From sequence record MZ475897.1: 64,000 nucleotides of DNA; one strand, 5' to 3'. A program made the position numbers and the translations under genes. Below are positions 5,366-34,453 of the stretch, in pieces. Every line of letters begins with the position of its first letter. Positions within the stretch are counted from its first letter, which is position 1. A model generated the notes under the pieces. The model saw nothing but the letters and a program-made list of their open reading frames with translations. It was not told the origin of the DNA and made no database searches.

Positions 5366-5369
5366 AAGC

Positions 5370-5375
5370 TAATTT
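5370..5375 (+). promoter_or_regulatory. TAATTT motif, candidate late promoter element
   Basis: Same hexamer lies about 23-33 nt before several starts (12562, 31208 on +; 47784, 50931, 57760 on -). Confidence 0.35.
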
Positions 5376-5404
5376 AACCAAGAAAGCCACTTGAGGAAAA
5401 GATC

Positions 5405-5623
5405 ATGGAAAACAAGTTTTACAACCCACTGACAGCCGCCGAGACTGTAAAGTCACAGTCAAGCACGGATAAGGCAGAAAGTACGAGCGGTGCGTTTCAA
5501 GTTGAAAACCCGAACGTCTGTCCTAAGTGCGCATCGTCTACTGTCCCCACTCAGTTACTTGACGGGGAACAGGTGATGTTCTGCACATCCTGCCGTGTGA
5601 GTCTCGCCATTCCATTGAAGTGA
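5405..5623 (+). CDS. small zinc-ribbon protein
   Basis: CPKC...CTSC motif, GAGG RBS. Confidence 0.6.
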   Translation: MENKFYNPLTAAETVKSQSSTDKAESTSGAFQVENPNVCPKCASSTVPTQLLDGEQVMFCTSCRVSLAIPLK

Positions 5624-5630
5624 GGTTATA

Positions 5631-7556
5631 ATGGGCATTCGTGTCGGACGCCAGTACGCTGGCTCTCCACCTGAGGAGGCCAAGAAAAAGAAACAGTCTA
5701 CTCTTGGCTCCGCATCCCTCCCCCGAGCAGTAGGCGAAGCTATCCGCAGTGAGAGTTCGAAGCGTCACACAGAGTTTCTATCTCAGTCTGCTGGTGGCGC
5801 AGGAATGGCTGCTGGTAATATGCAGATTGGTACCGTACCGCTAGACATTGACTTAGAGCCAATGATGGAAGGTATGGACTATGATGCTGATGACCGACAG
5901 CTATTCAACGTCTACCGCGATATGTATCACTTCGACCCAATCTGCGGCTCTTACGTGGACTTGTTCTCAACGCTGCCGTTCTCTGATGTGAGTTTCAGTG
6001 GCGCGAAGGACAGTGTGCTTGAGCCGTATTACGAAGTGAACGAACGTCTGTCACTGACGTCCAGTATGCCGAACATCTGTACCGACATTCAGGTTACTGG
6101 CGCATTCATTGGCAGCATGATCTACAACAAAGACCGTAAGAAATTCATCGACCTGATGACGCACCGTTACGACAATATCGACGTGACACCGCTTCCGTTT
6201 ATCAGTCAGGACCCGATGTTTGACTTGCGTATTCCTCAGTACGTGAAGCAAGCCTTCAACAAAGAAGGTAAGCGAATCGATGCGCTCAAGAAAGAGCTGG
6301 GGCCTGGCTTTGTTGAAAAGCTGATGAACGATCAAACGATGGAGCTTGACCCTATTGGGACAATCTATATCCCTCGCAAGACGTTCACTTTCGGTGAAGG
6401 TATCTCTGTATTCCGTCGTGTGTTGCCTATCTGGCTAATTGAGAAGAACCTGTATCGCGGTACGTTGATTGAATCTGGTCGTCGTCAACGCGGTATTCTT
6501 CATGCTCAGTTGGGTGATGGCGATCAGTGGGAACCTTCGCAGGAAGAAATGGATTTCATGACAGACCTGTTGCTGTCTGCTGATAGTGACCCTATCGGTA
6601 GTATCATCACAACTCGTCTGGGCGTCAACATTAGTGAGTTCCGCCAAGGCGGTGACTTCTGGAAGATTACCGATATCTGGGACCAGACTGCTACGTTTAA
6701 GATGCGTGCAATGGGTATCAGTGAGGCATTCCTGAGTGGTGAAGCCAACTATGATTCCGGCGCTGCTGGCCTGACTATCTTTGTCGAGGCGATGCGTGCT
6801 TTCCGTGATCATCTGACGCGTAAGGTCTACTATGAGAAAGTCTTCCCGCTTATCAGTATGATGAATGGCCTTGCTGTTCAGCGTAACGGTAAGATCGTTA
6901 AGAAGAACAATCTCATGGACGGCGGTCTGACCGAAGTTATGCACAGACTGAATGACGGCTCTAAGCTGTTTATCCCGAACGTGCATTGGTCTAAGCAGCT
7001 TCGTCCTGATGTTGACCAAGCGATGATGGAAAACTTGCGTGCTATGACTGAGCTGGGTGTTCCAGTTCCGTTACGTGCAATCGCATCTGCTGGTGGCTAC
7101 AACTTCGACCAGATTCTGATGGACCAAGATGAAGACCTCGCTATGCGCCGTAAGCTGATGGCTTATAAGAAGCGTATGGCAGAAGTTGATTCTGAGTTCA
7201 AAGCACCAGAAGAAGGCGCGGAAGGTGGCGATAGCTTTAGTTCTGTTTCTAACGATCTCAAGCGCCGTCGTCGTCACATTGCAGGTATCGGTTTGTCCTC
7301 AGCTGTGCTTGGCGGTGAACGCCGTAAAGGCCTGCTGGGCCGTGATTTCGGTGAGCAGTCAGAAGTCTTCGAGTTCACCAAAACCGGCAAGAAGAAACAC
7401 ATCATCGGTCAGGCTCGTGCTAACCATAAAGCGAACGATGCTATTTGGAAAGCAGCACGCAACTATGAAGCCAACAAAACGATGCCTCTTGATAACGGTA
7501 AAGTGTCCTTTGAGCCTACCGCGCAAGAGCTTCGCGCTATGTCGAGACTTCGCTAA
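5631..7556 (+). CDS. probable portal protein
   Basis: 641 aa, follows the terminase; portal-like segments (YRDMYHFDPICGSYVD, MGISEAFLSGEANY). Mainly position and size. Confidence 0.6.
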   Translation: MGIRVGRQYAGSPPEEAKKKKQSTLGSASLPRAVGEAIRSESSKRHTEFLSQSAGGAGMAAGNMQIGTVPLDIDLEPMMEGMDYDADDRQLFNVYRDMYHFDPICGSYVDLFSTLPFSDVSFSGAKDSVLEPYYEVNERLSLTSSMPNICTDIQVTGAFIGSMIYNKDRKKFIDLMTHRYDNIDVTPLPFISQDPMFDLRIPQYVKQAFNKEGKRIDALKKELGPGFVEKLMNDQTMELDPIGTIYIPRKTFTFGEGISVFRRVLPIWLIEKNLYRGTLIESGRRQRGILHAQLGDGDQWEPSQEEMDFMTDLLLSADSDPIGSIITTRLGVNISEFRQGGDFWKITDIWDQTATFKMRAMGISEAFLSGEANYDSGAAGLTIFVEAMRAFRDHLTRKVYYEKVFPLISMMNGLAVQRNGKIVKKNNLMDGGLTEVMHRLNDGSKLFIPNVHWSKQLRPDVDQAMMENLRAMTELGVPVPLRAIASAGGYNFDQILMDQDEDLAMRRKLMAYKKRMAEVDSEFKAPEEGAEGGDSFSSVSNDLKRRRRHIAGIGLSSAVLGGERRKGLLGRDFGEQSEVFEFTKTGKKKHIIGQARANHKANDAIWKAARNYEANKTMPLDNGKVSFEPTAQELRAMSRLR

Positions 7557-7884: not shown

Positions 7885-8271
7885 GTGAGCGGAATGTTTC
7901 CTCATCATGTAATTGAACAAAAGAAAGGCTTCGTGTTTATCGTTACTCCGATTGAGGACGATCCAGACAGTCTCGAAGCTGCGGAAGAAGTGCGTGCCGT
8001 ACTCGAAGAGTCTTGGCCTACTGCACCTTCTGAGTTGACCGTGGACGACGTTCGCGATCCTGAAGAAGCTGAGTTAATCTTGGCTGACATTCTGGAGGTT
8101 CTGGGCGAAGCAGAATCTGAGTACGCGAACAAAGTCCTGATCAACAGCGTAATTGTTGTCGGCGCTCTGGCCATCGTTAACGTCCTGCTGCTGGACGAAG
8201 AAGTCAATTCCGAAGAAGAGGAAGAAGACGATGACGCTGATCAGTCTGCGGACGAAGAAGAGTTCGAATAA
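7885..8271 (+). CDS. highly acidic hypothetical protein
   Basis: GTG start after AGGAG; D/E-rich C-terminus. Confidence 0.6.
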   Translation: MSGMFPHHVIEQKKGFVFIVTPIEDDPDSLEAAEEVRAVLEESWPTAPSELTVDDVRDPEEAELILADILEVLGEAESEYANKVLINSVIVVGALAIVNVLLLDEEVNSEEEEEDDDADQSADEEEFE

Positions 8272-8280
8272 CGTAGACCG

Positions 8281-8300
8281 TGAGGACCTTCGGGTCCTCA
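8281..8300 (+). promoter_or_regulatory. UUCG hairpin covering an RBS and start codon
   Basis: TGAGGACC-TTCG-GGTCCTCA, perfect 8-bp stem, no U tract, contains GAGGA and the A of ATG 8300. Confidence 0.55.
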
Positions 8301-8434
8301 TGAATCTAACAGACAAGCATCCCGTACTTGCCGCCAAGTATCTCACTAATCAGACCCCTGTGTATGCGCGTGCGTTACTTGATGAACTCAACAACGAGGA
8401 AGTATCTGACCTCTACTATCAAATGGTAGCATGA
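8300..8434 (+). CDS. small hypothetical protein (44 aa)
   Basis: MNLTDKHPVL...; ATGA overlap with the next gene. Confidence 0.45.
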   Translation: MNLTDKHPVLAAKYLTNQTPVYARALLDELNNEEVSDLYYQMVA

Positions 8435-8913
8435 TGGACAAAACAGAGAGCGCAAGCTCCAATAGCGAAAGGCACCGAATCTATTTCAGGCAGCCGCAAC
8501 GAGTACCTCCCTTCGATACAGCTTTTGTTCGTGCGTCAGACACCACGAGCCTCAAGCTGCTTCTCTCGGCTGCTCCTGAACATTGTCAGATCATATTGTT
8601 TACGGACGGCACCGGCACTGCTTATGCCATGAAACGCCTCTTTAAGCGCAAATTCCTTTTGAACTCTCAAGCTCTACAACTCGATCTGCCTACGATAACA
8701 CTCACGGGTCAGGTCGTTTATCAGTTCGTTCGCGGCGGCTCTGTGCGCGACAAACTGAGTCGTTACTTCTGTGCTGGACCAAGCTATCTGCATGAGCTGG
8801 CACAAACGTCCGTTGAATCAGACGTTCTCGATATGTTCTGTTTGGGCTTAGACTTCCATACGGTATTGCGTGCGAGGGAGCGTGGCCGTTCTATTGTCTT
8901 TACGGAGGAATAA
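8431..8913 (+). CDS. hypothetical protein
   Basis: 160 aa coupled ORF. Confidence 0.55.
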   Translation: MMDKTESASSNSERHRIYFRQPQRVPPFDTAFVRASDTTSLKLLLSAAPEHCQIILFTDGTGTAYAMKRLFKRKFLLNSQALQLDLPTITLTGQVVYQFVRGGSVRDKLSRYFCAGPSYLHELAQTSVESDVLDMFCLGLDFHTVLRARERGRSIVFTEE

Positions 8914-9941
8914 TGGGAAGAACGTTTGCGTCAGTGACTCGCCACTCACCTGTCGCTCAAATACCTAAGATGGAAATCAAATACGGTAAGAAGCCTATGC
9001 TTCACGTAGTTGATGCATCTAACTGGATGTGTCGTGCTTACTTTGCCACACGCGATAAGCCTGTATATGCATCAGACGGTACACCCATCTACGGCCTGCG
9101 CCAGTTTCTGTACATGGTTCAGGATCTGATTGATATAGCAGCCAAAGACCCTAACGGTTGCTACATTGCTTTCTGCTTCGACCCAAGCTCAAACGAAACG
9201 TGGCGTTATCGTGCTCTGCAAAACTGGGCAGCAACCAAGAAGAAGAAATTCATCAGAGGTGTGTTCAAGAAAAGCAGCGACTATAAAGGCAACCGAGACC
9301 GCTCTCAAACAGCCGAGCTTGGTGTGCAGATGATTCTAGCGCGGCAGATTCTTGAACTTGCAGGCTTCTATGTGGGCCTGAAAAAGCCATACGAGTGCGA
9401 CGACCTTGTAGGAACTATCTGCCATAGATTCAAGCGCAAGTATCTGATCAAACTCTACTCACGCGATAAGGACTATGTACAGCTTGTTGATCACAAGAAC
9501 GTTGAACTCATTATGCAGGCGCAGTCTAACGCAAAAGAACGCCGCTTCGATTTCAAAACAGCGAAAGGCTTCTTCGGTGTTCCTGCCGACCGTGTTATCG
9601 ATATGCTCGCGCTGTGCGGTGATGGTGTCGATAACGTTCCAGGTATTCCTGGTATTGGTGAGAAGACTGCTATTGAACATATTCATCGCCACGGTGGTGC
9701 TATTGAACTTCGTGACGCTCTGCTTAATGGCAAAGTGAAATCGAATGCAGGCTGGGCTAAAGCATTGCGCTCAGAGATTCCTTCGATGGACCTTGAACTC
9801 CAGATGGAACTTGTCACTATCTGCCGCAACGTGCCGGGCATGCCTCGCACTATCGATGCGTTTGCTAATCGCACGCCTGATGTTAAAGCGCTCAAAGCAG
9901 TTAAGAAGCGTCTGGGCCTGACTAAACTATTACACGTATAG
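8913..9941 (+). CDS. 5'-3' exonuclease / flap endonuclease (PolI N-terminal or T4 RNase H-like)
   Basis: VVDASNWMCRAY, YECDDLVGT, SRDKDYVQL, H3TH motif LCGDGVDNVPGIPGIGEKTA. Confidence 0.92.
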   Translation: MGRTFASVTRHSPVAQIPKMEIKYGKKPMLHVVDASNWMCRAYFATRDKPVYASDGTPIYGLRQFLYMVQDLIDIAAKDPNGCYIAFCFDPSSNETWRYRALQNWAATKKKKFIRGVFKKSSDYKGNRDRSQTAELGVQMILARQILELAGFYVGLKKPYECDDLVGTICHRFKRKYLIKLYSRDKDYVQLVDHKNVELIMQAQSNAKERRFDFKTAKGFFGVPADRVIDMLALCGDGVDNVPGIPGIGEKTAIEHIHRHGGAIELRDALLNGKVKSNAGWAKALRSEIPSMDLELQMELVTICRNVPGMPRTIDAFANRTPDVKALKAVKKRLGLTKLLHV

Positions 9942-12600: not shown

Positions 12601-13371
12601 ATGAGCAATATCGATACCACAATGCCTGAAGGCAAATGGGAGTTCAACGAGTCGGTTGCTTGCGTGTTTGATAACATGCTGCAAAACTCCATCCCATCTT
12701 ATGGCCGTATGCGTGACCTGACGTACCGTCTGGGTCGTCGCTTCGTAACTCCCGGTTCAGCTATCGTTGATCTCGGTGCTTCACTTGGCCGAGCTATCGA
12801 ACCGTTTGCAAAAGAGTTCGGCAAGTATGACTACCATCATGCTGCTGACGCGCCGGGCGAAGACTACGAAACAGGCAATCACTATAGCCTGTATGAAGTA
12901 GCTCCTGCTATGCGCGAACGTCTGGTGCAGAATGAAGTGCTCAACTCAGTGAATGCCAAACTGGAAAGTGAATCGCTGGTAGATACTGACACGTTTATGT
13001 TCGACGGTCAGGTGCATTGCTCGTTGATTCTGAGTGTGCTGACTCTCCAGTTCACGCCGATTGAACATCGTCAACACATTCTGGAAAACGTGTACAACTC
13101 ACTGCAACCAGGCGGCGCATTCATCCTCGTTGAGAAGGTGTTAGGTGATAACAACTATCTCGACAAAATGCTGGTGGGCACCTACTACCAGATGAAAGGC
13201 GGTAACGGTTACAGCGCCGAGTCGATTGCGACTAAACGTAAGTCATTGGAAGGCGTACTCGTTCCTGTTAAAGCAGCGTGGAACGAAGAACTGTTGCGTA
13301 AAGCAGGCTTCGGTCAGGTGGAGAGTTTCTACCGCGACCTGAACTTCGCAGGATGGATTGCTATTAAGTAA
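12601..13371 (+). CDS. cmoA: carboxy-S-adenosyl-L-methionine synthase, CmoA family
   Basis: WEFNESVACVFDNMLQNSIPSY, DLGASLG, LTLQF, LQPGGAFILVEK, NGYS..SIATKRKSLE (Arg matching E. coli R199), LRKAGF, NFAG: colinear with E. coli CmoA. Confidence 0.9.
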   Translation: MSNIDTTMPEGKWEFNESVACVFDNMLQNSIPSYGRMRDLTYRLGRRFVTPGSAIVDLGASLGRAIEPFAKEFGKYDYHHAADAPGEDYETGNHYSLYEVAPAMRERLVQNEVLNSVNAKLESESLVDTDTFMFDGQVHCSLILSVLTLQFTPIEHRQHILENVYNSLQPGGAFILVEKVLGDNNYLDKMLVGTYYQMKGGNGYSAESIATKRKSLEGVLVPVKAAWNEELLRKAGFGQVESFYRDLNFAGWIAIK

Positions 13372-13380
13372 GGAAATACT

Positions 13381-14643
13381 ATGAAAGTAAACGGGCGTAT
13401 CTTAGCTATCGTCCCACACAAGACAATGCAAGACCGTACCAAGTCTGGTGTGGGTTCGTACATTGATGGGCTAGAGGCATACGGCTTCTGCGACTTTATC
13501 ACGGACGGAGAGAACAGCTCCGTTACGAAAAGTCAGTGGTTCACTTACGGTGACACTACTCTCAGTGACGGTTATAAGATAGGGCATATCCAGAGCGAGT
13601 TGCTGATTGCACTTGAGCGCCTCCCATACCGTGCGATTATTTGCAGCACGTATGAGGCGATTGAAGCCTGTGTGTCTCTGGGACTGCCAAAGATTATGCC
13701 CGTTTACTATCGCACGCACAACAGCTTTTTGCTCACACAAGATCTCAAGGGTCTTGGTGCAGAGAAGATCCATCGTGCGTTGTTGCAAGCACGCGTCACA
13801 GGGCTGCGCATACTTGCTAACTGTGATTCGACTGCGATCAATCTTACTGAGCGCTATAAGACGCCAGTACACGTTGCCTACAACTCGTTCTCGGTGCCTG
13901 ACTACAACCCACCAGCGCGGCGTGTTCCACAGTTGTTGATTATCTGTCGCTATGAGAAGGTCAAGCGCACGTTGTTTGCTGCGCGTATTGCTGCTGCATC
14001 AGGATTACCCGTTCGTGTTATGACAGGCAGTGATCGTCAAGCACGCAATTGGGAGAAAGAGCTGGCTGAGGCGGGTGTCAAAGAATACACTGTCGTCAGC
14101 GGCCTTAGCGGTAAACAGAAACTCGAATTTATAGGCGCTTGCACAGTAGCCCTTTCTACTGCGAGCGTTGAATCTTTTGCTAACGGTGTGCGTGAGTCTA
14201 TCCCCTACTGTCCTACCTTTATCGTGCAAACATCCAAGTACGATTGGGCTAAGGACTATACGCGCTTCTGTACTGCCGACAAGCATGTTCATATCAGAAC
14301 TGTTGATCGCGTATCAGACCAAGCCGTAGCTGAAATCGGAAGTGAGATAGCGCGAGTTGCTACCACACGTTATCTGACAGGGCCGCAGCGTAAGCAGCTA
14401 CTGACTGCTTGGGCAAAGCAAGTTGATCGTGGTTGGTCCGACTTTGTTCAGAAGGCTGTTGTTGACGATGACGGCAAGCCGCTGCGCACCGAGCTGTATC
14501 AAGAACTGATCGACAAATCAGAAATCGATTGGTCACAAACGCCCACGCTAATGCGTACTGTAAATGCGTTACATAAATGCCACGCTCGTTTGGGCCTGAC
14601 ATTTGATGGCACTAAAATCAAATATAAGAGGAAGCGCAAATGA
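13381..14643 (+). CDS. GT-B fold glycosyltransferase (GT4-like)
   Basis: N-terminal SGVGSY loop, CRYEKVKR donor-binding motif, E-x7-E motif ESFANGVRE. Confidence 0.75.
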   Translation: MKVNGRILAIVPHKTMQDRTKSGVGSYIDGLEAYGFCDFITDGENSSVTKSQWFTYGDTTLSDGYKIGHIQSELLIALERLPYRAIICSTYEAIEACVSLGLPKIMPVYYRTHNSFLLTQDLKGLGAEKIHRALLQARVTGLRILANCDSTAINLTERYKTPVHVAYNSFSVPDYNPPARRVPQLLIICRYEKVKRTLFAARIAAASGLPVRVMTGSDRQARNWEKELAEAGVKEYTVVSGLSGKQKLEFIGACTVALSTASVESFANGVRESIPYCPTFIVQTSKYDWAKDYTRFCTADKHVHIRTVDRVSDQAVAEIGSEIARVATTRYLTGPQRKQLLTAWAKQVDRGWSDFVQKAVVDDDGKPLRTELYQELIDKSEIDWSQTPTLMRTVNALHKCHARLGLTFDGTKIKYKRKRK

Positions 14644-15716
14644 GTGTTATCGGTGATATTTATAACATACCACAACCTTTCGCAATGTATGTCGGGAATT
14701 GTGAGACGCGTGCTCAAGCCAAAGTTGCTGCTGGTACAATCGAGTGGGCGCCAGAGAAAGTGTGCTGCACCGTAGATGATGGTAACAATCTGTTCCCCAA
14801 CGTACCTTCAATCAACCCTGCTGACGTGCATAAGACAGATGCAGAAACTTTAGTGATTGGCTGTGCACCTTTCGGCGGCCGCATTGACGAGCACATGGAC
14901 AAAGCTATTCGTAGCGCTATCTATCGTGGACGCAACATTGCTGCTGCTATGCATACGCGCCTGGCGGATAACCCCGAATACGTTGAGCTGGCCGATCGCT
15001 ACAACGTCAAGCTGTATGACTTCCGTCATCGTCCTGATGCGTACCCACTCGGTACTGGTGAGAAGCGTAGCGGTCTGCGTCTGTTAACTGTCGGTACTGA
15101 TAGCTCCTGCGGCAAGAAGTTTACCACGCTGTCTCTGTATCGTGAACTAAAGCGCATCCACGCAGACACTGTGTTTTGCTCTACTGGTCAAACAGGCTTC
15201 CTGATTAGCGGTTGCGGTATCAACAACGACACGATTGTTGCTGACTTCCTTGCTGGTGCTGCTGAATCCCTTTCGCCTGCAGGTCCTGCTGATCGTATCT
15301 ATCTGATTGAAGGCCAGGGCGCTATCACGCATCCAGCCTACACAGGCGGTAGCATGAGCTTGATTGCTGGCTCTCAGCCTGATCATCTCATCCTGTGCCA
15401 CGCATGGAACCGCCAGAATCAGTTGGGCGTTAAGCGTAAGCCTGACCTTGATTTTGAGATGCGTGCTAACATTGAAGCGGCGCGTATTCACGGTCTCAAC
15501 CCGACCTACATCGGTATCAGCATTAACTTCTCTGAGTGTGATTTGACACAGGATGAGCAAGATAAAATCCTGTACCAACTCGCATCAACGTATGAGATTC
15601 CCGTGTTCGACCCATCACAGGACACTTCTGTGCTGCGTGACCTCGCTCGTATGTTAGCAACTAAAGCCAAAGCAAGGAGCCTCGATGGCCAAGCATCCAC
15701 TGCGCAAGCTGTTTGA
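14640..15716 (+). CDS. DUF1611 family P-loop protein (DgcN-like N-acetyltransferase)
   Basis: VGTDSSCGKKFT, STGQTG, DFLAGAAE, IEGQGAITHPAY, GSQPDHLILCH. Confidence 0.88.
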   Translation: MSVIGDIYNIPQPFAMYVGNCETRAQAKVAAGTIEWAPEKVCCTVDDGNNLFPNVPSINPADVHKTDAETLVIGCAPFGGRIDEHMDKAIRSAIYRGRNIAAAMHTRLADNPEYVELADRYNVKLYDFRHRPDAYPLGTGEKRSGLRLLTVGTDSSCGKKFTTLSLYRELKRIHADTVFCSTGQTGFLISGCGINNDTIVADFLAGAAESLSPAGPADRIYLIEGQGAITHPAYTGGSMSLIAGSQPDHLILCHAWNRQNQLGVKRKPDLDFEMRANIEAARIHGLNPTYIGISINFSECDLTQDEQDKILYQLASTYEIPVFDPSQDTSVLRDLARMLATKAKARSLDGQASTAQAV

Positions 15717-16560
15717 ACAGCATGTGAAAAAAGAAGTGAAAGCAGACAAGGTAGCTGTGCTGCTTTCATCTGGCCTCGATGGTTTAGTCAGTGCGTTAGC
15801 TGCACACGACCTGGGTAAGAAGGTACATGCCTTCACATTCCAAATGGGTGACAACCCTAGCTTCGACAGTCGCCACGCACAGATCGTTGCACAAAAGATG
15901 GGATGGGAGTTCACTCTCGTTAAAGTTCCCACCAGCGTGTCTGCTATCGCGTTAGCGTGGCGCGTGCTGCACTCCAAGTATCGCTGCATCAAGAAGCGTG
16001 ACTATGAATGTGCGTACCCTATGGTCTATTGCTACAAGGCAATCAAAGACGCTGGGTATAAGTATGTGTTAAGCGGGCTGGTGGCCGATGGCTACTTCCT
16101 GTATAACCGTAACACGCACATTCAGAAAATCAGCGGCCCGCACTCTGACGCTCAGAAGTATCATGAGTTCCGTACTCAATACTTTAGTCCGTGGCTTAAA
16201 CACGGTAAGAAGTCTCTGGGCGTTGACGGGTACAACCCGAGCGGTATGTTGCAGCATGAAATGTTGTGCGATAACTTCGGCCTGATTCACGTTAACCCGT
16301 GGATGCAGAACAAGGTGTTTGACTACTTCATCAAATACACTTGGCAGGAGCTGAATCAGCCTAAGCAGAAGATGCCACTAACCGAAGCGTGGGCAGAACA
16401 CATTGCTCTTGTTGGTCATCGCCCACACAGGGGCTATCAGACAGAAGCCAAAGTGCCTGAATACTTTGAGCATCTGATCGATAACCCTGAGATTAACTTT
16501 AACGGGCGCAAGCGCATCATGGACGTGGCACGCGACTGGTCCAAACGAGAGCCTGAATAA
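15685..16560 (+). CDS. asparagine synthetase C-domain-like ATP-dependent amide ligase
   Basis: PP-loop VAVLLSSGLDG, VLSGLVADGYF (compare SGxGADExF), NPW...VFDY; no N-terminal glutaminase domain. Confidence 0.72.
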   Translation: MAKHPLRKLFEQHVKKEVKADKVAVLLSSGLDGLVSALAAHDLGKKVHAFTFQMGDNPSFDSRHAQIVAQKMGWEFTLVKVPTSVSAIALAWRVLHSKYRCIKKRDYECAYPMVYCYKAIKDAGYKYVLSGLVADGYFLYNRNTHIQKISGPHSDAQKYHEFRTQYFSPWLKHGKKSLGVDGYNPSGMLQHEMLCDNFGLIHVNPWMQNKVFDYFIKYTWQELNQPKQKMPLTEAWAEHIALVGHRPHRGYQTEAKVPEYFEHLIDNPEINFNGRKRIMDVARDWSKREPE

Positions 16561-16815
16561 ATGCATCCTGTTATCACAGACTTTCTTGGTCCTATCGTTA
16601 AGCGGCTGGGCTTATTCACTGCTATATTCGGTTTTGTCGGCGTGCTGCTGTCTGTGATCGCAGTGCTTGTGTGCCGCCCAGAAGTCCTTCAATACGAATA
16701 CGATACTGTAAATAGACTTCGTACTGAGGGTATTGTATTCTTGGGTAAAGGCGTTCTTATTTACATCGTAGGCGAGATACTTGAAGGCACGTTCAAGTGG
16801 AGAAAAGATGATTAA
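16561..16815 (+). CDS. putative membrane protein
   Basis: Two hydrophobic segments. Confidence 0.55.
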   Translation: MHPVITDFLGPIVKRLGLFTAIFGFVGVLLSVIAVLVCRPEVLQYEYDTVNRLRTEGIVFLGKGVLIYIVGEILEGTFKWRKDD

Positions 16816-17078: not shown

Positions 17079-17531
17079 ATGAATCTGTTTTCTATTTTAA
17101 AACAGCAAGTGAAGAAATCCCTGACGACCGAAGCAACGCTTGAGCCAGAAGTGCGCAAACACTTTGACTGGCGTTTCAGTGTTGACGTCAAAGGTCTGAT
17201 GTACATTGTAGGCAAGACTGGTGCTAACACCTGCTTCTATCTTGAGCCAGGTCACGTTGAGCCTACTGCCTGCTATCCTGATGAACTACTTGCGAAGATT
17301 GATAGCTGGGGCGCTGCTAAGTATGTGTCCTACGCTGTCTACTTCAAGAAGTTCTCAAGCCCTGTAGCTGAGAACATCAAGACGCTTGAGCAAGCCAAGA
17401 CAGGCAAGCCTAAAGCGTTTAAGAAAGGCTACTTTATCTGTGGCGTAACACCGAAAGGTAAGCGCGTCAAACTGTGTCGTCTGCACAACAGCCTGAGCGG
17501 TATGCAGTGGGTTGATGTAGATCAGAAGTAA
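17079..17531 (+). CDS. hypothetical protein
   Basis: 150 aa ORF with GAGG RBS. Confidence 0.6.
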   Translation: MNLFSILKQQVKKSLTTEATLEPEVRKHFDWRFSVDVKGLMYIVGKTGANTCFYLEPGHVEPTACYPDELLAKIDSWGAAKYVSYAVYFKKFSSPVAENIKTLEQAKTGKPKAFKKGYFICGVTPKGKRVKLCRLHNSLSGMQWVDVDQK

Positions 17532-17545
17532 AACAAGGAGCATAT

Positions 17546-17866
17546 ATGATTAGCGACATTGACATTGGCCATTATTATTGTTCTGCGAGCGGTATACCGT
17601 TTCGCGTAAAAGAACGTGCAGCACACGGACAAGATTGTTCTCTGTCGATGATCGTATTTGAGAACGTGGAAGCAACTAAGGATTACCCTGTTGGTCAAAC
17701 TTGGGTGCTTCCAGAATCTCTGTTCGTGAAACAGTATTCCGAATTTACGGAAGGAAAGTATCATGAACGAAACAACGCTCTTAGAGCATCTGAAATCAAG
17801 ACACTGGCAACCAGAGAAGCATTTCGGGTGGCTTTCGCCGAAGACCCTGACAGTGCCACTGTATAG
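17546..17866 (+). CDS. DUF1653-like protein
   Basis: GHYY..SG.PFRV..RA.H...MIVFE...TWVLP..LF pattern. Confidence 0.55.
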   Translation: MISDIDIGHYYCSASGIPFRVKERAAHGQDCSLSMIVFENVEATKDYPVGQTWVLPESLFVKQYSEFTEGKYHERNNALRASEIKTLATREAFRVAFAEDPDSATV

Positions 17867-18279
17867 CTTTGACCGACAGATGAGAGGAGTTCAAGTTTAT
17901 ACGCCTAGCGCACCGAAGAAAGACCCGAACCCTAAAGCGTGTCGTTACTTCACTCGCGTGTTCGGTGGCAAACAGTTGGTGTGGGGAACGGAAATTAGAC
18001 CTATACGGGCCGACCGTTTTCTTAACTGAGTCTGTGTTCAAAGCGTGTGCGCTACATCGTCTCGGTCTCAATGCGTGGTCTGTTTTAGGCTCGAACGTGA
18101 GTGACTATTTATACCACCAGCTCAGTCTTCTTAATCTGCACTTTGTTTGTCTAGGTGATGCGGATAAAGCTGGTGAGGAGTTCAGTCAGACGTTTGGTCG
18201 TGGTGCTGTTAGTGCCGACTTGGACGAGATGACTGATGAGCAGTTACTCGATTTAACTCTACCACTATTAAGGAAATAG
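17763..18279 (+). pseudogene. frameshifted Toprim (primase-like) gene
   Basis: ORF 17763-18029 (LTVPLYS...YFT...VWGTE) continues in the +1 frame as LDLYGPTVFLTESVFKA...GDADKAG; shift at GGAAATT near 17990-17996. Confidence 0.65.
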
Positions 18280-19187: not shown

Positions 19188-19589
19188 ATGAGACCTGAAA
19201 ACATTTCACGCACCTATCGCGTCGGTCAGTCTGACCTGGAGAAAGCACACAATGTCTGCGGAGAGAACAATGTAACACTCTCAGATGTGGTGCGCAGATA
19301 CATCGAAAGAATCGTACTGACTGAGGGTGAGTTCCTTATGAACGAGCGTAAGCACGTACCTGAGTCCCAACTGAATGTACGCCTGCCCTTTTATATTGCG
19401 CACTCCTTTGCATCTGTGTGTAAGTCTCGCGGTACGTTAGCCTCTAAAACCATTCTCAACTTTGTCAAGAATATTGCTCTTTCCGGGACTATCCCTGAGG
19501 AGTTAAAGTATGCTTCTGACGCAGAGTTGCGTGCCTATATTACCTCAGAGCGCTCTCGCCTCGATGCACTGGAAGCAAAACTCAAATGA
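19188..19589 (+). CDS. tandem ribbon-helix-helix-like DNA-binding protein
   Basis: Two RHH-like units (RTYRV...TLSDVVRRYI; QLNVRL...LASKTILNFV). Confidence 0.5.
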   Translation: MRPENISRTYRVGQSDLEKAHNVCGENNVTLSDVVRRYIERIVLTEGEFLMNERKHVPESQLNVRLPFYIAHSFASVCKSRGTLASKTILNFVKNIALSGTIPEELKYASDAELRAYITSERSRLDALEAKLK

Positions 19590-20425
19590 TTCTAACTAGT
19601 CCCATTCGCTATCAGGGTAACAAACGCACTCTGATGCCTCTTATTCTCGAACATGCGCCTGTGAAGGATTGCGTTCGCATGATAGACGCATTCGGTGGTA
19701 GTGGTACTGTTGCGCTCAACATGCCTCACAAGTTTCGCATCTACAATGAACTGAGCACGCCTGTGTTTGAGATCGTCCAGCTGCTTGCGCATCAAGACCC
19801 GAAGAAAACATTGGGTCAGATTAAGCGTATCGTCAAGCGTTTTTGTCTAACCAATAGCAGCCAAGACAACTACGACATGTTCCGTGCGTATGTGCAGAAG
19901 AAGCCAAGTCCGTTGTTCCATTACATCGCACACAGGCACGCACGCTCTAACATGCTGCGCTTCAACCAGAAAGGTATCTACAACGTGCCCTTCGGTGAGC
20001 GTGGCCTGATTGGCAAGTTCGATCAGCTTGAACAGGAGCTGGTGCAGTTCCACGAGCGTATGCAGAACACGCACATCACCAACATGCGCTATAACCTGTT
20101 GCTCAAGTCTGTGTCAAAGCATATCGGACCGAACACGTTCATTTACTTTGACCCTCCATATCTTGCTAGTGGTGCAATGCAGTACGGCAAGTGGACTGAG
20201 CACAACGAGCGCAACCTGTTGTCCGTGCTTGAATATCTGAATCGTCAAGGCTGCCCGTGGATGTTGAGCAACGTTCTCCAACATCGTCATCACACTAACG
20301 ACCTGCTCAAGCGCTGGCTAAAGAAACACGCAACGACTGTCATCTATCCTGACAAGTCTTATTCAATGGCCAACTCTCATTCCGATAGTCACAGCACTAT
20401 CGAGATTCTGGCAATGAACTACTGA
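19586..20425 (+). CDS. dam: DNA adenine methyltransferase, D12/Dam class
   Basis: SPIRYQGNK, DAFGGSG, RFNQKG.YNVPFG, YFDPPY. Confidence 0.9.
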   Translation: MILTSPIRYQGNKRTLMPLILEHAPVKDCVRMIDAFGGSGTVALNMPHKFRIYNELSTPVFEIVQLLAHQDPKKTLGQIKRIVKRFCLTNSSQDNYDMFRAYVQKKPSPLFHYIAHRHARSNMLRFNQKGIYNVPFGERGLIGKFDQLEQELVQFHERMQNTHITNMRYNLLLKSVSKHIGPNTFIYFDPPYLASGAMQYGKWTEHNERNLLSVLEYLNRQGCPWMLSNVLQHRHHTNDLLKRWLKKHATTVIYPDKSYSMANSHSDSHSTIEILAMNY

Positions 20426-31617: not shown

Positions 31618-32316
31618 ATGGCAAAAATTGCTAAAGCAAAGGAAGGGAAAAAGAAAAGCAACCCTATGTTGATTGACCTGAAAAAGTTCAAGTCAGTTAA
31701 ACAGCTTAAGGGTGCGAAGTACAACCCTCGTTTCATTACAGACAGCCGACTGAGAGCGCTCGAAGGTTCTTTGGGCAGCTTCGGCGATTTGTCTGGCGTG
31801 GTGTTCAACAACAGCGTAGACAGTGGCGTGCTGATCTCAGGCCACCAGCGTCTCAAGTCGATTGAGAAGTGGGACTCGCGCATTGAGATTCAGCAAACGT
31901 CTGACAAGTACGGCACGGTAGCGCTGGGTTATATCCATGCCACCAGCGCCAAAGGTAAAACGATCAGCATCCCACTGCGTATCGTTAACTGGTCAGATAA
32001 GAAAGTGGAGTTTGCTGCTAACATTGCTGCGAACGCCCACGGCGGTGAGTTCGATAACAAAAAGCTCGCGTCTCTTGTTGAGAAGCTGGACCTGACTACA
32101 ATCAAGCCAGCTCTTATCGGGCTTGACCCGTTAGAGATTCGCGGCCTGCAACAGACGCTGAGCAAACAAGCTATCGTCGAGCAGGAAAAGCGTGTTGGTA
32201 AAACAACAGGCAAAATGAACGGCAGCACTGGCGAGTTCAAAGAGTACACGACTGATGAAGTTGGTACTGCGCTGACCTGCACCTGCCCACGTTGTGGCTT
32301 TAAGTTCGAGGGATAA
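31618..32316 (+). CDS. ParB/Srx N-terminal domain protein with C-terminal Zn knuckle
   Basis: YNPR.I......L..SL..FG, LISGHQR, ANIAAN..GGEFD, CTCPRCG. Confidence 0.78.
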   Translation: MAKIAKAKEGKKKSNPMLIDLKKFKSVKQLKGAKYNPRFITDSRLRALEGSLGSFGDLSGVVFNNSVDSGVLISGHQRLKSIEKWDSRIEIQQTSDKYGTVALGYIHATSAKGKTISIPLRIVNWSDKKVEFAANIAANAHGGEFDNKKLASLVEKLDLTTIKPALIGLDPLEIRGLQQTLSKQAIVEQEKRVGKTTGKMNGSTGEFKEYTTDEVGTALTCTCPRCGFKFEG

Positions 32317-32317
32317 C

Positions 32318-34453
32318 ATGATCATCAAGCCGCCTACAATGAAAGAGATTAATAAGCTGCCCAAGCCCTGGTCAGGTATGAGTTTCTTTGCAGGTTGCGG
32401 TGGTTCATCTACCGGTCACAAGATGGCCGGTATTAACATCCTACTGAGCAACGAGTTCGTGGACGCGGCTCGTGAATCGTATGAAGCGAACCATCCAACA
32501 ACCAAAGTGTTGCCCCACGATATTCGTCGTCTTGACCCGAAAAAGCTGCTTAGCTATTGCGGCCTGAGTCAGGGCGAACTGGACTTGCTCGACGGCAGTC
32601 CTCCGTGCTTCACCGAAGACACGTTCATTCATACAGACACTGGTATGAAGTTCATCACTGATATGCGCATCGGTGACTTCGCTATGACCTCTGTTGGTAA
32701 GTATCATCCTGTGTATGACACGATGGTACGTCCGTATGATGGTCAGATGCACAGAATTGAAACGCTGCTTGGTCAGAACAATGCAACGCCTGAACATCCG
32801 TTCTTTGTTCGTCGTCAGAGCGAAGAGGGTGGCGGGTACAGTGAGCCGTTCTGGTGTGACGCTAAAGATGTGCAGGAAGGCGATTTGTTGGGTACGCCTC
32901 GTGTTACGCCTGATATGGGTGAAGCACACACGCATGAGATTATCTCGTCGTTGACTGCACAGCTTGTGCGTTGGATTGCATTGCCTGAGTTCTGGTGGCT
33001 GATTGGTCACTGGTGCAATCGCGGTGCAATCGATAAGATTCGTGGTGTCGATGTTATTCAGTTCACCTCGATGACAGCGATGGAAAACTCGCTGGTGGAA
33101 CAAGCGTTCGACGTGCTCAAGTTAAGCAGCATCAATAGCGCTTCGTCCGACATGGGCGTTCATCGTAAGACCGTTCGTGTTGTTATGGACACAGACCTGT
33201 TGCTGTTCTTGCGTATGTTTATCGCACAGGGCAAGAAGTCTATGTCCCGCCGTCTGCCTGGCATGATCTTCCATCTGGCCAAAGAGCTGAAACAGCAATT
33301 CATTCTCGGCTATCTGGGTCGTGATTACGTCACAGCAATGGGCGTTGGTCATGCGTTAGAGGCTGACTCAAAGCGCTTCCTCGTTGAGATGAATTACCTG
33401 TGCTGCTCTGCGTTCAACCGACCGCTGTTCGATGCAATGTTGTTCACTGACTTGCATTACGGCAGTCCTATGTTACCGCCGAGTCGCTTCATCACCAAAG
33501 AGCACATCGGCTTCCTGTTCTTGCAAGAAGAGGTTAATTTCTTCTTCGAGTTCGAGCCGGAAGACCCGCATCTGTGGGTTGAAGTGATTGAGAACTTTAC
33601 GCACCATGAAACGTGCAACGTCTACAACTTCTCAGTCAGTGTTGATGAGACGTATGTTGCCAACGGTATGGTCGTACATAACTGCAAAGGGTTCTCGACT
33701 GCTGGCGTGAAAGAAGACGGCTGGGGCAAAGAGGTTAAGTACAGCGGCAACAAGTATCAGCAAGTCGATGACCTGTTCGATCAGTATTGCCGTATGCTCA
33801 AGCACATGCAGCCTAAAACGTTCACTGCGGAAAACGTTAGTGGCCTCGTTAAAGGTGCGTCGAAGGGTTACTTCATTGAAATCATGAAGACCTTTGATCA
33901 GCTGGGCTACTATGTGCGAGCGCCGTTGCTTAATGCTGCGTGGCTTGGTGTGCCTCAGTCTCGTGAGCGTATCATCTTTATGGGTGTGCGCAAAGACGTG
34001 GCGAAAGCACTCGGCTATAAAACTGCGTTGACTGCTGTGCCTGATGTAACACCTCAATCAAGCATGGCGTTCCTTGCAGATGCATTGCCGAACATTCGTC
34101 GCTATAAAGGTACGGAGCGTGACATTATCAAGTATCTGCCTGCTGTTAACGGCCCGATGCCTACGATTACCGCTGCTGATGCTATCGCATACGAAACAGC
34201 ACGCTTCTCCTCTGCTGGCTTCATTGAAGACGACAAAGGGCACAGACGCAAGCTGACGATTGACGAACTCAAAGTTGTGTCAGGCATGCCTAGTGATTAC
34301 GTGCTCACAGGTAAGTTTGAAGAACAATGGGAACGTCTCGGTCGTGTGTGCGTACCTGCAATGACGTGTGCTGCGGCAAGCGCGTTGATACGCCATGTGC
34401 TTGAGCCTTACGCGAAGCTGCGTAAAAAGAAACCTGGGGATCGTTTTCGTTAA
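32318..34453 (+). CDS. C5 cytosine DNA methyltransferase homologue, intein-containing; predicted carboxymethyltransferase
   Basis: Motif I FFAGCGG, IV GSPP/CKGFS, VI ENVSGL, VIII QSRER, IX RKLTIDE, X reads LGRVC instead of xGN[AS]V; start ATG 32318. Confidence 0.88.
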   Translation: MIIKPPTMKEINKLPKPWSGMSFFAGCGGSSTGHKMAGINILLSNEFVDAARESYEANHPTTKVLPHDIRRLDPKKLLSYCGLSQGELDLLDGSPPCFTEDTFIHTDTGMKFITDMRIGDFAMTSVGKYHPVYDTMVRPYDGQMHRIETLLGQNNATPEHPFFVRRQSEEGGGYSEPFWCDAKDVQEGDLLGTPRVTPDMGEAHTHEIISSLTAQLVRWIALPEFWWLIGHWCNRGAIDKIRGVDVIQFTSMTAMENSLVEQAFDVLKLSSINSASSDMGVHRKTVRVVMDTDLLLFLRMFIAQGKKSMSRRLPGMIFHLAKELKQQFILGYLGRDYVTAMGVGHALEADSKRFLVEMNYLCCSAFNRPLFDAMLFTDLHYGSPMLPPSRFITKEHIGFLFLQEEVNFFFEFEPEDPHLWVEVIENFTHHETCNVYNFSVSVDETYVANGMVVHNCKGFSTAGVKEDGWGKEVKYSGNKYQQVDDLFDQYCRMLKHMQPKTFTAENVSGLVKGASKGYFIEIMKTFDQLGYYVRAPLLNAAWLGVPQSRERIIFMGVRKDVAKALGYKTALTAVPDVTPQSSMAFLADALPNIRRYKGTERDIIKYLPAVNGPMPTITAADAIAYETARFSSAGFIEDDKGHRRKLTIDELKVVSGMPSDYVLTGKFEEQWERLGRVCVPAMTCAAASALIRHVLEPYAKLRKKKPGDRFR
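32606..33682 (+). mobile_element. intein (359 aa) with degenerate LAGLIDADG region
   Basis: Begins CFTEDT, block B ATPEHPF, ends YVANGMVVHN followed by Cys+1; remnants WWLIGHWCNRG and FILGYLGRD. Confidence 0.9.

Follow-up and report, generated by a model that had tools for sequence, protein, structure and literature searches.

In this study, we observed that a four-gene cassette of a jumbo Erwinia phage probably belongs to a CmoA/CmoX/CmoY-type system for hypermodifying cytosine in the DNA of the phage itself, in which it would account for the small-molecule and tailoring steps. The cassette lies at positions 12601-16560 of the window, by which we mean the whole stretch of 64,000 nucleotides from record MZ475897.1 that was analysed. 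In Synechococcus phage S-B43, CmoA, CmoX and CmoY together yield 5-glycylcarboxymethylcytosine (Yang et al., Nat Commun 2025, PMC12783734). A sequence-only reading of the window had placed the quartet in a carboxymethyl-cytosine DNA pathway, and our data agree with it, as the ligase proves homologous to CmoY, a methyltransferase of the CmoX type is encoded as well and the clusters are conserved. The same reading took the pathway to be undescribed, which does not hold for the core (CmoA, a C5-carboxymethyltransferase and an AsnB-like amide ligase that takes an amino acid in place of ammonia), as this was published in December 2025 (PMC12783734); the glycosyltransferase, DUF1611 and racemase extensions are missing there and are undescribed. 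We found no report in the literature of DNA modification in the window phage or any of its relatives. The features considered are as follows:

12601..13371, + strand: CmoA homologue (carboxy-SAM synthase), 256 aa, from TIGR00740, phrog_4752 and homology to SpCmoA of S-B43
13381..14643, + strand: GT-B (GT4-like) glycosyltransferase, ORF2, 420 aa, predicted from an AlphaFold model, Foldseek and conserved motifs
14640..15716, + strand: DUF1611 / DgcN-like protein, 358 aa, from Pfam, NCBIfam and PDB 7xrj
15685..16560, + strand: CmoY-like ATP-dependent amide ligase, ORF4, 291 aa, from SpCmoY homology and Asn_synthase
17079..17531, + strand: conserved 150-aa protein, candidate extra component, phrog_23597
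31618..32316, + strand: ParB-like protein upstream of CmoX, phrog_620 (2.3e-31)
32294..34453, + strand: predicted CmoX-type DNA cytosine-C5 carboxymethyltransferase, intein-split, from Pfam and alignment with SpCmoX
32606..33682, + strand: predicted intein, 359 aa, between the Pro and the catalytic Cys of motif IV

The ORF coordinates agree exactly with the four-gene layout and junction sizes that had been read from the letters: all four genes are co-directional, the first two lie 9 nt apart, and the next two junctions overlap by 4 nt and 32 nt. Though these spacing figures stand, the tight coupling does not count as proof of linkage, since it is not above the genome background. According to the RefSeq annotation of SNUABM_7, a 97%-identical phage, 53 of the 76 adjacent gene pairs are separated by a gap of <=10 nt, and 36 of the 76 overlap, with a median gap of 1 nt. 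As such close packing is usual in the genome, linkage rests on conservation across phages instead. Promoter or terminator signals bounding the quartet were not found.

The CmoA homologue matches the experimentally verified SpCmoA over its full length (28% identity over 238 aa, E 2e-25) and also matches phrog_4752. Its top NCBIfam match is TIGR00740, at 134 bits against a cutoff of 193.3 bits; the proven SpCmoA itself reaches only 115.6 bits, lower than the window protein, so this cutoff leaves out true phage CmoAs. RefSeq and PHROG label the protein a tRNA methyltransferase, and cellular CmoA works in tRNA modification (PMC12783734, introduction), which would suit a cassette that modifies RNA by tRNA cmo5U-type chemistry, or yields a free carboxy-SAM-derived metabolite, instead of modifying DNA. 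We regard this as very improbable, since a CmoB-type partner was not found in any cassette examined, a homologue of C5 DNA methyltransferases that carries the carboxy-SAM-binding arginine occurs alongside the cassette, in several lineages right next to it, and double-stranded DNA is the shown substrate of the homologous S-B43 enzymes.

This methyltransferase homologue, the window CmoX, matches Pfam DNA_methylase (6.3e-38) in two parts that flank Intein_splicing and Hint_2, and its two extein segments are 31-55% identical to SpCmoX. The alignment with SpCmoX shows no variation in SPPC, ENV, QxRxR and G-R350. In alignment A3, to which the window protein contributes LGRVCVP, residues S95, P96, P97, C98, G349 and R350 are the same in all sequences. 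The window CmoX has both features used as criteria in PMC12783734, namely SPPC and an arginine at the position of SpCmoX R350. The intein junctions read SPP/CFTEDT...VVHN/CKGFSTAG, with canonical intein ends (C...HN/C); CmoX activity would need the predicted intein to be spliced out. The homologues are intein-free in L012, L105, L113 and PaBG, and intein-bearing in L010. RefSeq relatives of CmoX begin at the ATG at 32318. In the window genome CmoX is 15.7 kb away from the quartet. Its genomic association with CmoA, an AMP-forming ligase and ParBc was nevertheless found, as it adjoins CmoA and the ligase in L010/L011, L105, L113 and PaBG, and ParB-like homologues lie upstream of it in L010, L012 and PaBG; the ParBc-CmoX association is also described in PMC12783734.

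The third core enzyme, ORF4, is a full-length homologue of SpCmoY (33% identity, residues 14-286, E 2e-50), which joins glycine to 5-carboxymethylcytosine (5cxmC) in DNA (PMC12783734), and this homology supports the proposed role of the ligase in amidating carboxymethyl-C. Pfam detected the PP-loop domain only (Asn_synthase, 1.8e-13), and the protein aligns to positions 235-394 of the 517-position AsnB model, indicating that the glutaminase domain is absent, as expected of a CmoY-type, AsnB-like synthetase. This alignment and the motif SSGLDG (residues 28-33, nt 15766-15783), which departs from the canonical SGGxDS, bear out the earlier description of a glutaminase-less ligase with an altered PP-loop. 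The alteration is a trait of the clade (SSG[LM]D[GSA], with members showing SSGLDS, SSGMDS and SSGLDA), which also has an insertion of ~20 aa and the motif HRPHRGYQTEA. Its significance is doubtful: the final Ser is kept in some members, and the PaBG ligase has SSGVDS although PaBG carries no DUF1611.

With regard to the glycosyltransferase, ORF2 had zero matches in Pfam, PHROG and NCBIfam, Glycos_transf_1 included, and the homologue P0007 alone gave a weak PF00534 match. Its AlphaFold (AF2) model (pLDDT 81, pTM 0.81) displays the two Rossmann-like domains of a GT-B fold and has 200 PDB matches at E <=0.001; among the matches listed, almost all have the GT-B fold and are mainly glycosyltransferases, including GlgM, the phage HY126 glycosyltransferase, MshA, BshA and SenB (E ~1e-9). 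GT4 enzymes are known for an E-x7-E motif and for R-x4-K as the nucleotide-sugar phosphate-binding pair. Both E264-x7-E272 (nt 14170-14196) and R190-x4-K195 are invariant in 7 of 7 ORF2 homologues, so that the E-x7-E motif is intact, as had been claimed. The family is tiny, with 10 clusters below 1e-30 among 1.8 billion representatives, and every homologue with sufficient flanking sequence adjoins a Cmo-type ligase. Nucleotide-sugar synthesis genes were not seen in the cassette.

A gene-neighbourhood search, which had been suggested as a check, revealed that the glycosyltransferase and DUF1611 are embedded in CmoA/CmoX/CmoY clusters of several diverged phage lineages. Across related phages and contigs from metagenomes, the glycosyltransferase, DUF1611 and sometimes an alanine-racemase-like gene lie between CmoA/CmoX and the ligase. 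Contiguous runs were observed as ParB-CmoX-GT-DUF1611-ligase-CmoA (L010/L011), CmoX-CmoA-GT-DUF1611-racemase-ligase (L105) and CmoX-DUF1611-ligase-CmoA (L113), along with the orders CmoA-84aa-GT-DUF1611-racemase-ligase-DAHP synthase (L006) and CmoA-GT-ligase (L103). The DAHP synthase of a related phage cassette passes the aroFGH cutoff, which fits a demand for prephenate. In 9 lineages (ligase identity 46-100%) the ORF4-type ligase is directly downstream of DUF1611 or DUF1611-racemase, and the cassettes lacking DUF1611 (S-B43, SNUABM_5, PaBG, L103) have ligases of other clades, 24-35% identical. Since all these contexts come from related jumbo phages of a single broad group, the conserved linkage could in part reflect inheritance of the gene order.

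Close relatives differ by swaps of the glycosyltransferase and racemase modules: the glycosyltransferase is absent from the whole Alexandra genome, and SNUABM_3 has an added racemase-like gene. Such a hot spot for gene gain and loss would be expected if the glycosyltransferase, DUF1611 or both were passengers for another target (host envelope or LPS, virion proteins, D-amino-acid metabolism) and the DNA carried a simple S-B43-like amino-acid amide of 5cxmC. Phage GT-B enzymes frequently have non-DNA acceptors, the structural matches of ORF2 are generic (GT-B, TM ~0.5), and a distant relative of the enzyme in Xanthomonas phage BUDD sits amid NAD-salvage genes. We nonetheless consider it improbable that they are passengers, because the inserted genes invariably lie between CmoA/CmoX and the ligase despite varied gene orders and 37-50% protein identity, the glycosyltransferase family is almost restricted to Cmo-type cassettes, and the enzyme is basic with a C-terminal Lys/Arg tail in all lineages. 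DUF1611 likewise, among 50,697 phage records, was found only in Erwinia and Dickeya jumbo phages with the matching ligase clade; its 34 records equal in number those with a ligase >80% identical to ORF4.

The DUF1611 protein consists of a Rossmann-like N domain and a P-loop domain (DUF1611_N 5.5e-18, DUF1611 7.5e-47 in Pfam), with GTDSSCGKK at nt 15093-15119. It matches PDB 7xrj (E 3.6e-50; 1.5e-74 with a profile), its nearest cellular homologues are 33-40% identical, and it scores 286.1 bits against NCBIfam DgcN (NF041892), under the equivalog cutoff of 480. We observed that the enzymes divide by charge: the glycosyltransferase, the ORF4 ligase clade and CmoX are basic (pI 8.7-9.7; ORF2 9.3, glycosyltransferases 8.8-9.5 in 8 of 8 lineages, ORF4 9.3), and acidic to neutral values were obtained in every lineage for CmoA, DUF1611 and the racemase (pI 4.9-7.2; DUF1611 5.7 in the window), though this argument is weak because SpCmoY acts on DNA with a pI of 5.8. 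Charge and co-occurrence fit a DUF1611 protein that supplies or tailors the amine and a glycosyltransferase that acts on DNA. The most likely division of labour has CmoA, DUF1611 and the racemase preparing small-molecule substrates, with CmoX, the ligase and the glycosyltransferase working on DNA.

A distinctly less likely version keeps the pathway unchanged and has DUF1611 act on DNA instead of on a free metabolite, either as an acyl-CoA-dependent N-acyltransferase that would cap a free side-chain amine after ligation, for example that of an attached diamino acid, or as a two-component amide synthetase with the ligase, in which a D-amino acid would be delivered to the 5cxmC-adenylate. Chemically, 5cxmC is acetic acid bearing a substituent, so an amide between it and a D-amino acid amounts to an N-acetyl-D-amino acid with that substituent, the type of product made by DgcN, and the nearest cellular family is named 'N-acetyltransferase DgcN' in NCBIfam. 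An enolase-superfamily (MR_MLE) neighbour at 53 of 77 bacterial-type DUF1611 loci fits the DgcN-DgcA D-glutamate route; a DgcA-type racemase of this superfamily is absent next to DUF1611 from all phage cassettes. The strict pairing of DUF1611 with one ligase clade, with genes overlapping by 4-32 nt, also speaks for such a joint action, and the insertion and altered motifs of that clade could give a docking surface. Against it, DUF1611 is acidic (pI 4.9-7.0) in 10 of 10 lineages, in contrast to the DNA-acting enzymes, and the PP-loop change is not specific to DUF1611-linked ligases, as PaBG exemplifies. The more likely version, in which DUF1611 supplies or tailors the amine, has a difficulty of its own: DgcN-type N-acylation would use up the alpha-amine that the ligase needs, unless the substrate has a second amine, so the DgcN precedent does not fix the role of DUF1611.

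Beyond the quartet, a homologue of the 150-aa protein is located just downstream of the cassette, directly or a few genes on, in every lineage examined, and in PaBG one lies between CmoA and the ligase. It occurs in 53 phage records, which are the Erwinia, Dickeya AD1, PaBG and Yersinia phages with this CmoA, and JA-type Dickeya relatives gave matches to neither protein. Its AF2 model (pLDDT 87) had no fold match in the PDB.

In the preferred reading, with DUF1611 acting on a metabolite, CmoA would convert SAM and prephenate to carboxy-SAM, spliced CmoX would put the carboxymethyl group on C5 of DNA cytosine to give 5cxmC, and the ORF4 ligase would adenylate the 5cxmC carboxylate and then form an amide with an amine; these three steps are proposed from homology to the enzymes assayed in S-B43, with SPPC and the arginine adding to the case for CmoX. 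The amine may be other than plain glycine and supplied or tailored by the DUF1611 protein. It is probably derived from a D-amino acid, because DUF1611 is related to the D-glutamate N-acyltransferase DgcN and an alanine/serine-racemase-like enzyme is present in sister phages. The basic GT-B enzyme may finally move a sugar from a nucleotide-sugar to the side chain on DNA, and these last two steps are suggested by the linkage of the genes, the fold, the conserved motifs and the charge. Such a pathway is predicted to end in a carboxymethylcytosine that is amidated with an amino acid and glycosylated, which would shield the phage DNA from host nucleases.

Several known systems resemble parts of this scheme. 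Mycothiol and bacillithiol biosynthesis combine a GT4 enzyme, an ATP-dependent amide ligase and an acetyl-CoA N-acetyltransferase, the same three enzyme chemistries, and the best structural matches of ORF2 include MshA and BshA. The ligase and acyltransferase families are unrelated, however, with a PP-loop ligase here and a Cys-tRNA-synthetase-like one there, and DUF1611 here and a GNAT acyltransferase there. The predicted substrate is DNA here and a small thiol there; the parallel is an analogy, not membership. The DgcN-DgcA system of D-glutamate catabolism (NF041892; 7xrj) shares the two-domain DUF1611 architecture and the P-loop GTDxxxGKK, though the window protein is below the equivalog cutoff, lacks a DgcA-type neighbour and is partnered with an AsnB-type ligase. 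Phage DNA glycosylation is known from T4, which glucosylates 5hmC, and from RB69/HY126-type phages with arabinosyl-5-hydroxycytosine (PMC13326640). As in these, a phage GT-B enzyme is predicted to put a sugar on the C5 side chain of DNA, and the HY126 glycosyltransferase structure 9iqz is the second-best structural match of ORF2, at 14% identity and with similarity at fold level only; the handle is a carboxymethyl-amide in the window phage and a hydroxyl or hydroxymethyl in theirs. S-B43 shares the carboxymethyl handle on cytosine C5 followed by ATP-dependent amidation; all three of its enzymes have window homologues, and a ParB-like gene adjoins the window CmoX. The window system differs in its intein-bearing, distant CmoX, in the accompanying 150-aa protein, in a ligase of a separate clade (by PP-loop, insertion and HRPHRGYQTEA) that is always found with DUF1611, and in an inserted GT-B enzyme, to which sister phages add a racemase-like gene; PMC12783734 leaves glycosyltransferase, intein, Erwinia and jumbo phage all unmentioned. 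The glycosyltransferase and DUF1611 in the cassette thus predict a more elaborate modified base than the amidated carboxymethylcytosine described so far.

The analyzed stretch is 100% identical to Erwinia phage pEa_SNUABM_21 (MZ475897.1), a jumbo phage of 265 kb, and harbors four consecutive genes that are common to 8 sister phages at 96-98% DNA identity:

12601-13371, + strand: ORF1, CmoA-like
13381-14643, + strand: ORF2, glycosyltransferase (GT)
14640-15716, + strand: ORF3, DUF1611
15685-16560, + strand: ORF4, amide ligase

All four are annotated as 'hypothetical protein' in GenBank, while RefSeq calls ORF1 a 'tRNA methyltransferase'. The sequence-only reading gave the ORFs and the spacing between them (a 9-nt gap, then overlaps of 4 and 32 nt) correctly, and every one of its sequence-level claims about the quartet stands. 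The tight coupling that it noted is nevertheless the norm of this genome, in which 53 of 76 adjacent gene pairs lie no more than 10 nt apart and 36 overlap, and spacing was therefore dropped as evidence of an operon. No promoter or terminator pattern framed the quartet, in a scan that was uninformative (3 promoter-like sites against 8.5 expected). ORF1 matched TIGR00740 (134 bits) and phrog_4752; ORF3 consists of DUF1611_N and DUF1611 domains (7.5e-47), its top NCBIfam model being the N-acetyltransferase DgcN at 286 bits, which is under the cutoff of 480; and ORF4 has only the PP-loop-bearing synthetase domain of asparagine synthetase, with the PP-loop SSGLDG.

With reference to the literature, the core pathway is known from Synechococcus phage S-B43, where CmoA produces carboxy-SAM, CmoX, a C5-methyltransferase homologue recognized by its SPPC motif and an Arg350 contacting the carboxyl group, puts 5-carboxymethylcytosine (5cxmC) into DNA, and the AsnB-like ligase CmoY amidates 5cxmC with glycine (PMC12783734, December 2025). 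Genes for CmoX, CmoA and the ligase were reported by the thousand from phage contigs, often alongside a ParB-domain gene, and the authors pointed to clusters of ligases whose amine substrates are unknown; glycosyltransferases, inteins, Erwinia and jumbo phages are not mentioned (PMC12783734). No further paper on natural 5cxmC came up, and the papers on phages AD1 and PaBG give data on neither DNA modification nor restriction resistance. In our comparison, ORF4 aligned over its full length with the S-B43 CmoY (33% identity, E 2e-50), and ORF1 shared 28% identity with the S-B43 CmoA and scored higher than that assayed enzyme against the CmoA model. A C5-methyltransferase was detected at 32294-34453, directly downstream of a ParB-like gene (phrog_620), and its alignment with the S-B43 CmoX displays invariant SPPC, ENV, QxRxR and Gly-Arg350. 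Judged from these alignments, the whole CmoA/CmoX/CmoY core appears to be encoded by SNUABM_21. The overall direction of the earlier reading was right; it erred only in viewing the core, which is published (PMC12783734), as undescribed and in the importance attached to the altered PP-loop. The JA-type Dickeya relatives, with portal proteins 72-73% identical, gave no matches to CmoA or the ligase, which agrees with a gene comparison published for AD1, Y3 and JA11. A D12-class (Dam-like, DPPY) N6-adenine DNA methyltransferase at 19586-20425, 3 kb downstream of the cassette, represents a separate DNA modification.

The CmoX gene harbors a 359-aa intein (nt 32606-33682) whose insertion point is immediately ahead of the catalytic cysteine (SPP|CFTEDT...VVHN|CKGF), so that carboxymethylation of the DNA should depend on protein splicing. 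An intein occupies the same site in the CmoX of metagenomic locus L010, and the homologues in loci L012, L105 and L113 and in PaBG are free of inteins.

Gene orders varied among the compared phages and metagenomic contigs (L-numbers denote loci).

Gene orders of the cassette across phages and contigs
SNUABM_21, SNUABM_7: GT + DUF1611 + ligase
SNUABM_3: CmoA-GT-DUF1611-racemase-like-ligase
SNUABM_5: CmoA-ligase only
Alexandra, AD1: CmoA-DUF1611-ligase; GT nowhere in genome
Y3: ligase without GT, DUF1611 or racemase
L006: CmoA-84aa-GT-DUF1611-racemase-like-ligase-DAHP synthase
L010/L011 (overlapping contigs): ParB-CmoX(intein)-GT-DUF1611-ligase-CmoA
L103: CmoA-GT-ligase, without DUF1611
L105: CmoX-CmoA-GT-DUF1611-racemase-like-ligase
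L109, L024: GT-DUF1611-ligase
L111: DUF1611-racemase-ligase, without GT
L113: CmoX-DUF1611-ligase-CmoA

Close relatives infecting the same host differ by entire modules, and the linkage of GT and DUF1611 to the Cmo cassette is far beyond chance adjacency, although part of it is inherited gene order, since all contigs come from one broad related jumbo-phage group. The window also encodes a 150-aa protein (17079-17531; phrog_23597) that follows the cassette closely, directly or a few genes downstream, in every lineage examined, and its homologue in Pseudomonas phage PaBG sits between CmoA and the ligase; its 53 phage records belong to the very Erwinia, AD1, PaBG and Yersinia phages in which this CmoA occurs, with no matches in the CmoA-less JA-type Dickeya phages. 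Its AlphaFold2 model was confident (pLDDT 87), yet a PDB fold search gave no match, and this conserved protein is possibly a further undescribed module. In Alexandra (L002:4777-5394), SNUABM_3 (L003:6633-7253) and SNUABM_5 (L004:3737-4387) the gene after the ligase encodes a protein of about 206 aa, with no family match and no homologue in the window, where an 84-aa hydrophobic ORF (16561-16815) takes its place. Two short overlapping ORFs in different frames (88 and 104 aa, 17763-18279) may together represent a primase gene that is split or frameshifted, because their counterparts in relatives carry the annotation of small 'DNA primase' fragments.

ORF2 had no match in Pfam, PHROGs, NCBIfam or PDB sequences. 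Its AlphaFold model, built with 7 homologues (pLDDT 81), displays the GT-B fold, with GT4-type enzymes as top structural matches (GlgM, the phage HY126 glycosyltransferase, MshA, BshA and SenB), and a BFVD fold search gave generic viral GT-B matches only. E264-x7-E272 and R190-x4-K195 are invariant, and the C-terminus ends in a conserved Lys/Arg tail. The family is tiny, with 7 clusters in a database of 5.8 billion proteins and, in a set of 1.8 billion representatives, 10 that score below 1e-30, and homologues with enough flanking sequence were always within a Cmo cluster. The GT is an independent add-on, as it is also paired with a different ligase clade in L103. A distant homologue (22% identity, 447 aa) was noticed in Synechococcus phage BUCT-ZZ01 (L108:5743-7086), directly downstream of a 7-deazaguanine biosynthesis cluster (QueE, QueD, FolE); it is one of a second tier of relatives, 440-460 aa long, which may likewise be DNA-hypermodification glycosyltransferases.

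DUF1611 was detected in 34 of 50,697 phage records and a ligase sharing over 80% identity with ORF4 in an equal number, both sets coming from one Erwinia/Dickeya jumbo-phage group. Scans of IMG/VR with DUF1611, as single sequence and as profile, recovered this phage family only, and 78 of 80 loci from a JGI metagenome scan were bacterial and of DgcN type. The nearest cellular relatives are 33-40% identical, and an enolase-superfamily gene adjoins in 53 of 77 loci, which is the DgcN-DgcA arrangement, taken from the NCBIfam name to serve the N-acylation and racemisation of D-glutamate. A search started from the ligase disclosed about 19 clusters of the ORF4 clade and three further contexts (L109, L111, L113), again with DUF1611 directly upstream; across 9 lineages, at ligase identities of 46-100%, this clade always lies downstream of DUF1611 or of DUF1611 and racemase. 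The clade is marked by the PP-loop pattern SSG[LM]D[GSA], some 20 inserted residues and a HRPHRGYQTEA motif, and the ligases of cassettes without DUF1611 (S-B43, SNUABM_5, PaBG, L103) are only 24-35% identical to it. A PDB sequence search with the ligase found nothing. The idea that SSGLDG signifies lost adenylation and reliance on the DUF1611 P-loop was unsupported, because some clade members retain the terminal Ser and the PaBG ligase, from a cassette without DUF1611, has SSG. In L109, a 224-kb metagenomic phage contig, a 302-aa GNAT-family acetyltransferase (8192-9100) lies two genes downstream of GT-DUF1611-ligase.

Between DUF1611 and the ligase, four phage cassettes, though not that of the window, harbor an alanine/serine-racemase-like PLP enzyme:

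SNUABM_3 (L003), 4824-5759: racemase-like gene
L006, 12322-13287: racemase-like gene
L105, 7213-8190: racemase-like gene
L111, 6099-7001: racemase-like gene

Its presence suggests that a D-amino acid, or a substrate derived from one, enters the modification. In L006 a DAHP synthase (14162-15025; TIGR00034 aroFGH, 180 bits, passing the 173-bit cutoff) directly follows the ligase and would plausibly raise shikimate-pathway flux to prephenate, the CmoA co-substrate.

By homology to the assayed enzymes, the proposed route would begin with carboxy-SAM synthesis, followed by cytosine carboxymethylation and ATP-dependent amidation. Throughout the lineages, pI values are basic (8.7-9.7) for the GT, the ORF4 ligase clade and CmoX, and acidic to neutral (4.9-7.2) for CmoA, DUF1611 and the racemase. 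Together with the cellular DgcN-type loci and the racemase-like genes, this leads us to favour a division of labour in which CmoA, the racemase and DUF1611 would make carboxy-SAM and a tailored amine, and CmoX, the ligase and the GT would act on DNA, with the GT adding a sugar last. The charge argument is weak, as the S-B43 CmoY itself has a pI of 5.8, and the main alternative is that DUF1611 acts on the DNA-borne adduct, or jointly with the ligase. The boldest reading, to which we give rather less than even confidence, is a class of hypermodified base unseen before: 5cxmC would be amidated with a D-amino-acid-derived amine from the DUF1611/DgcN-like enzyme (certain phages using a dedicated racemase as well), after which the dedicated GT-B enzyme would glycosylate it on the DNA.

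If true, no sugar linked via a carboxymethyl-amide handle, no D-amino acid in DNA and no part played by the DUF1611 family in nucleic-acid chemistry would have preceded it; it would also enlarge the known range of DNA chemistries that phages use against restriction, and supply new enzymes with which DNA can be functionalised at specific sites. The cultured, closely related Erwinia/Dickeya phages, with four cassette configurations, form a natural, ready-made deletion series. With 5cxmC, discovered in 2025, it became clear that carboxyl handles on DNA can undergo amidation, and the question was left which further amines and decorations exist; this locus offers a concrete and testable answer, a modular cassette that adds a GT, a DUF1611 enzyme and a racemase to the core pathway. 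Compared with the S-B43 system, the locus is of the published CmoA/CmoX/CmoY kind, extended by the undescribed modules GT and DUF1611 and, in relatives, the racemase.
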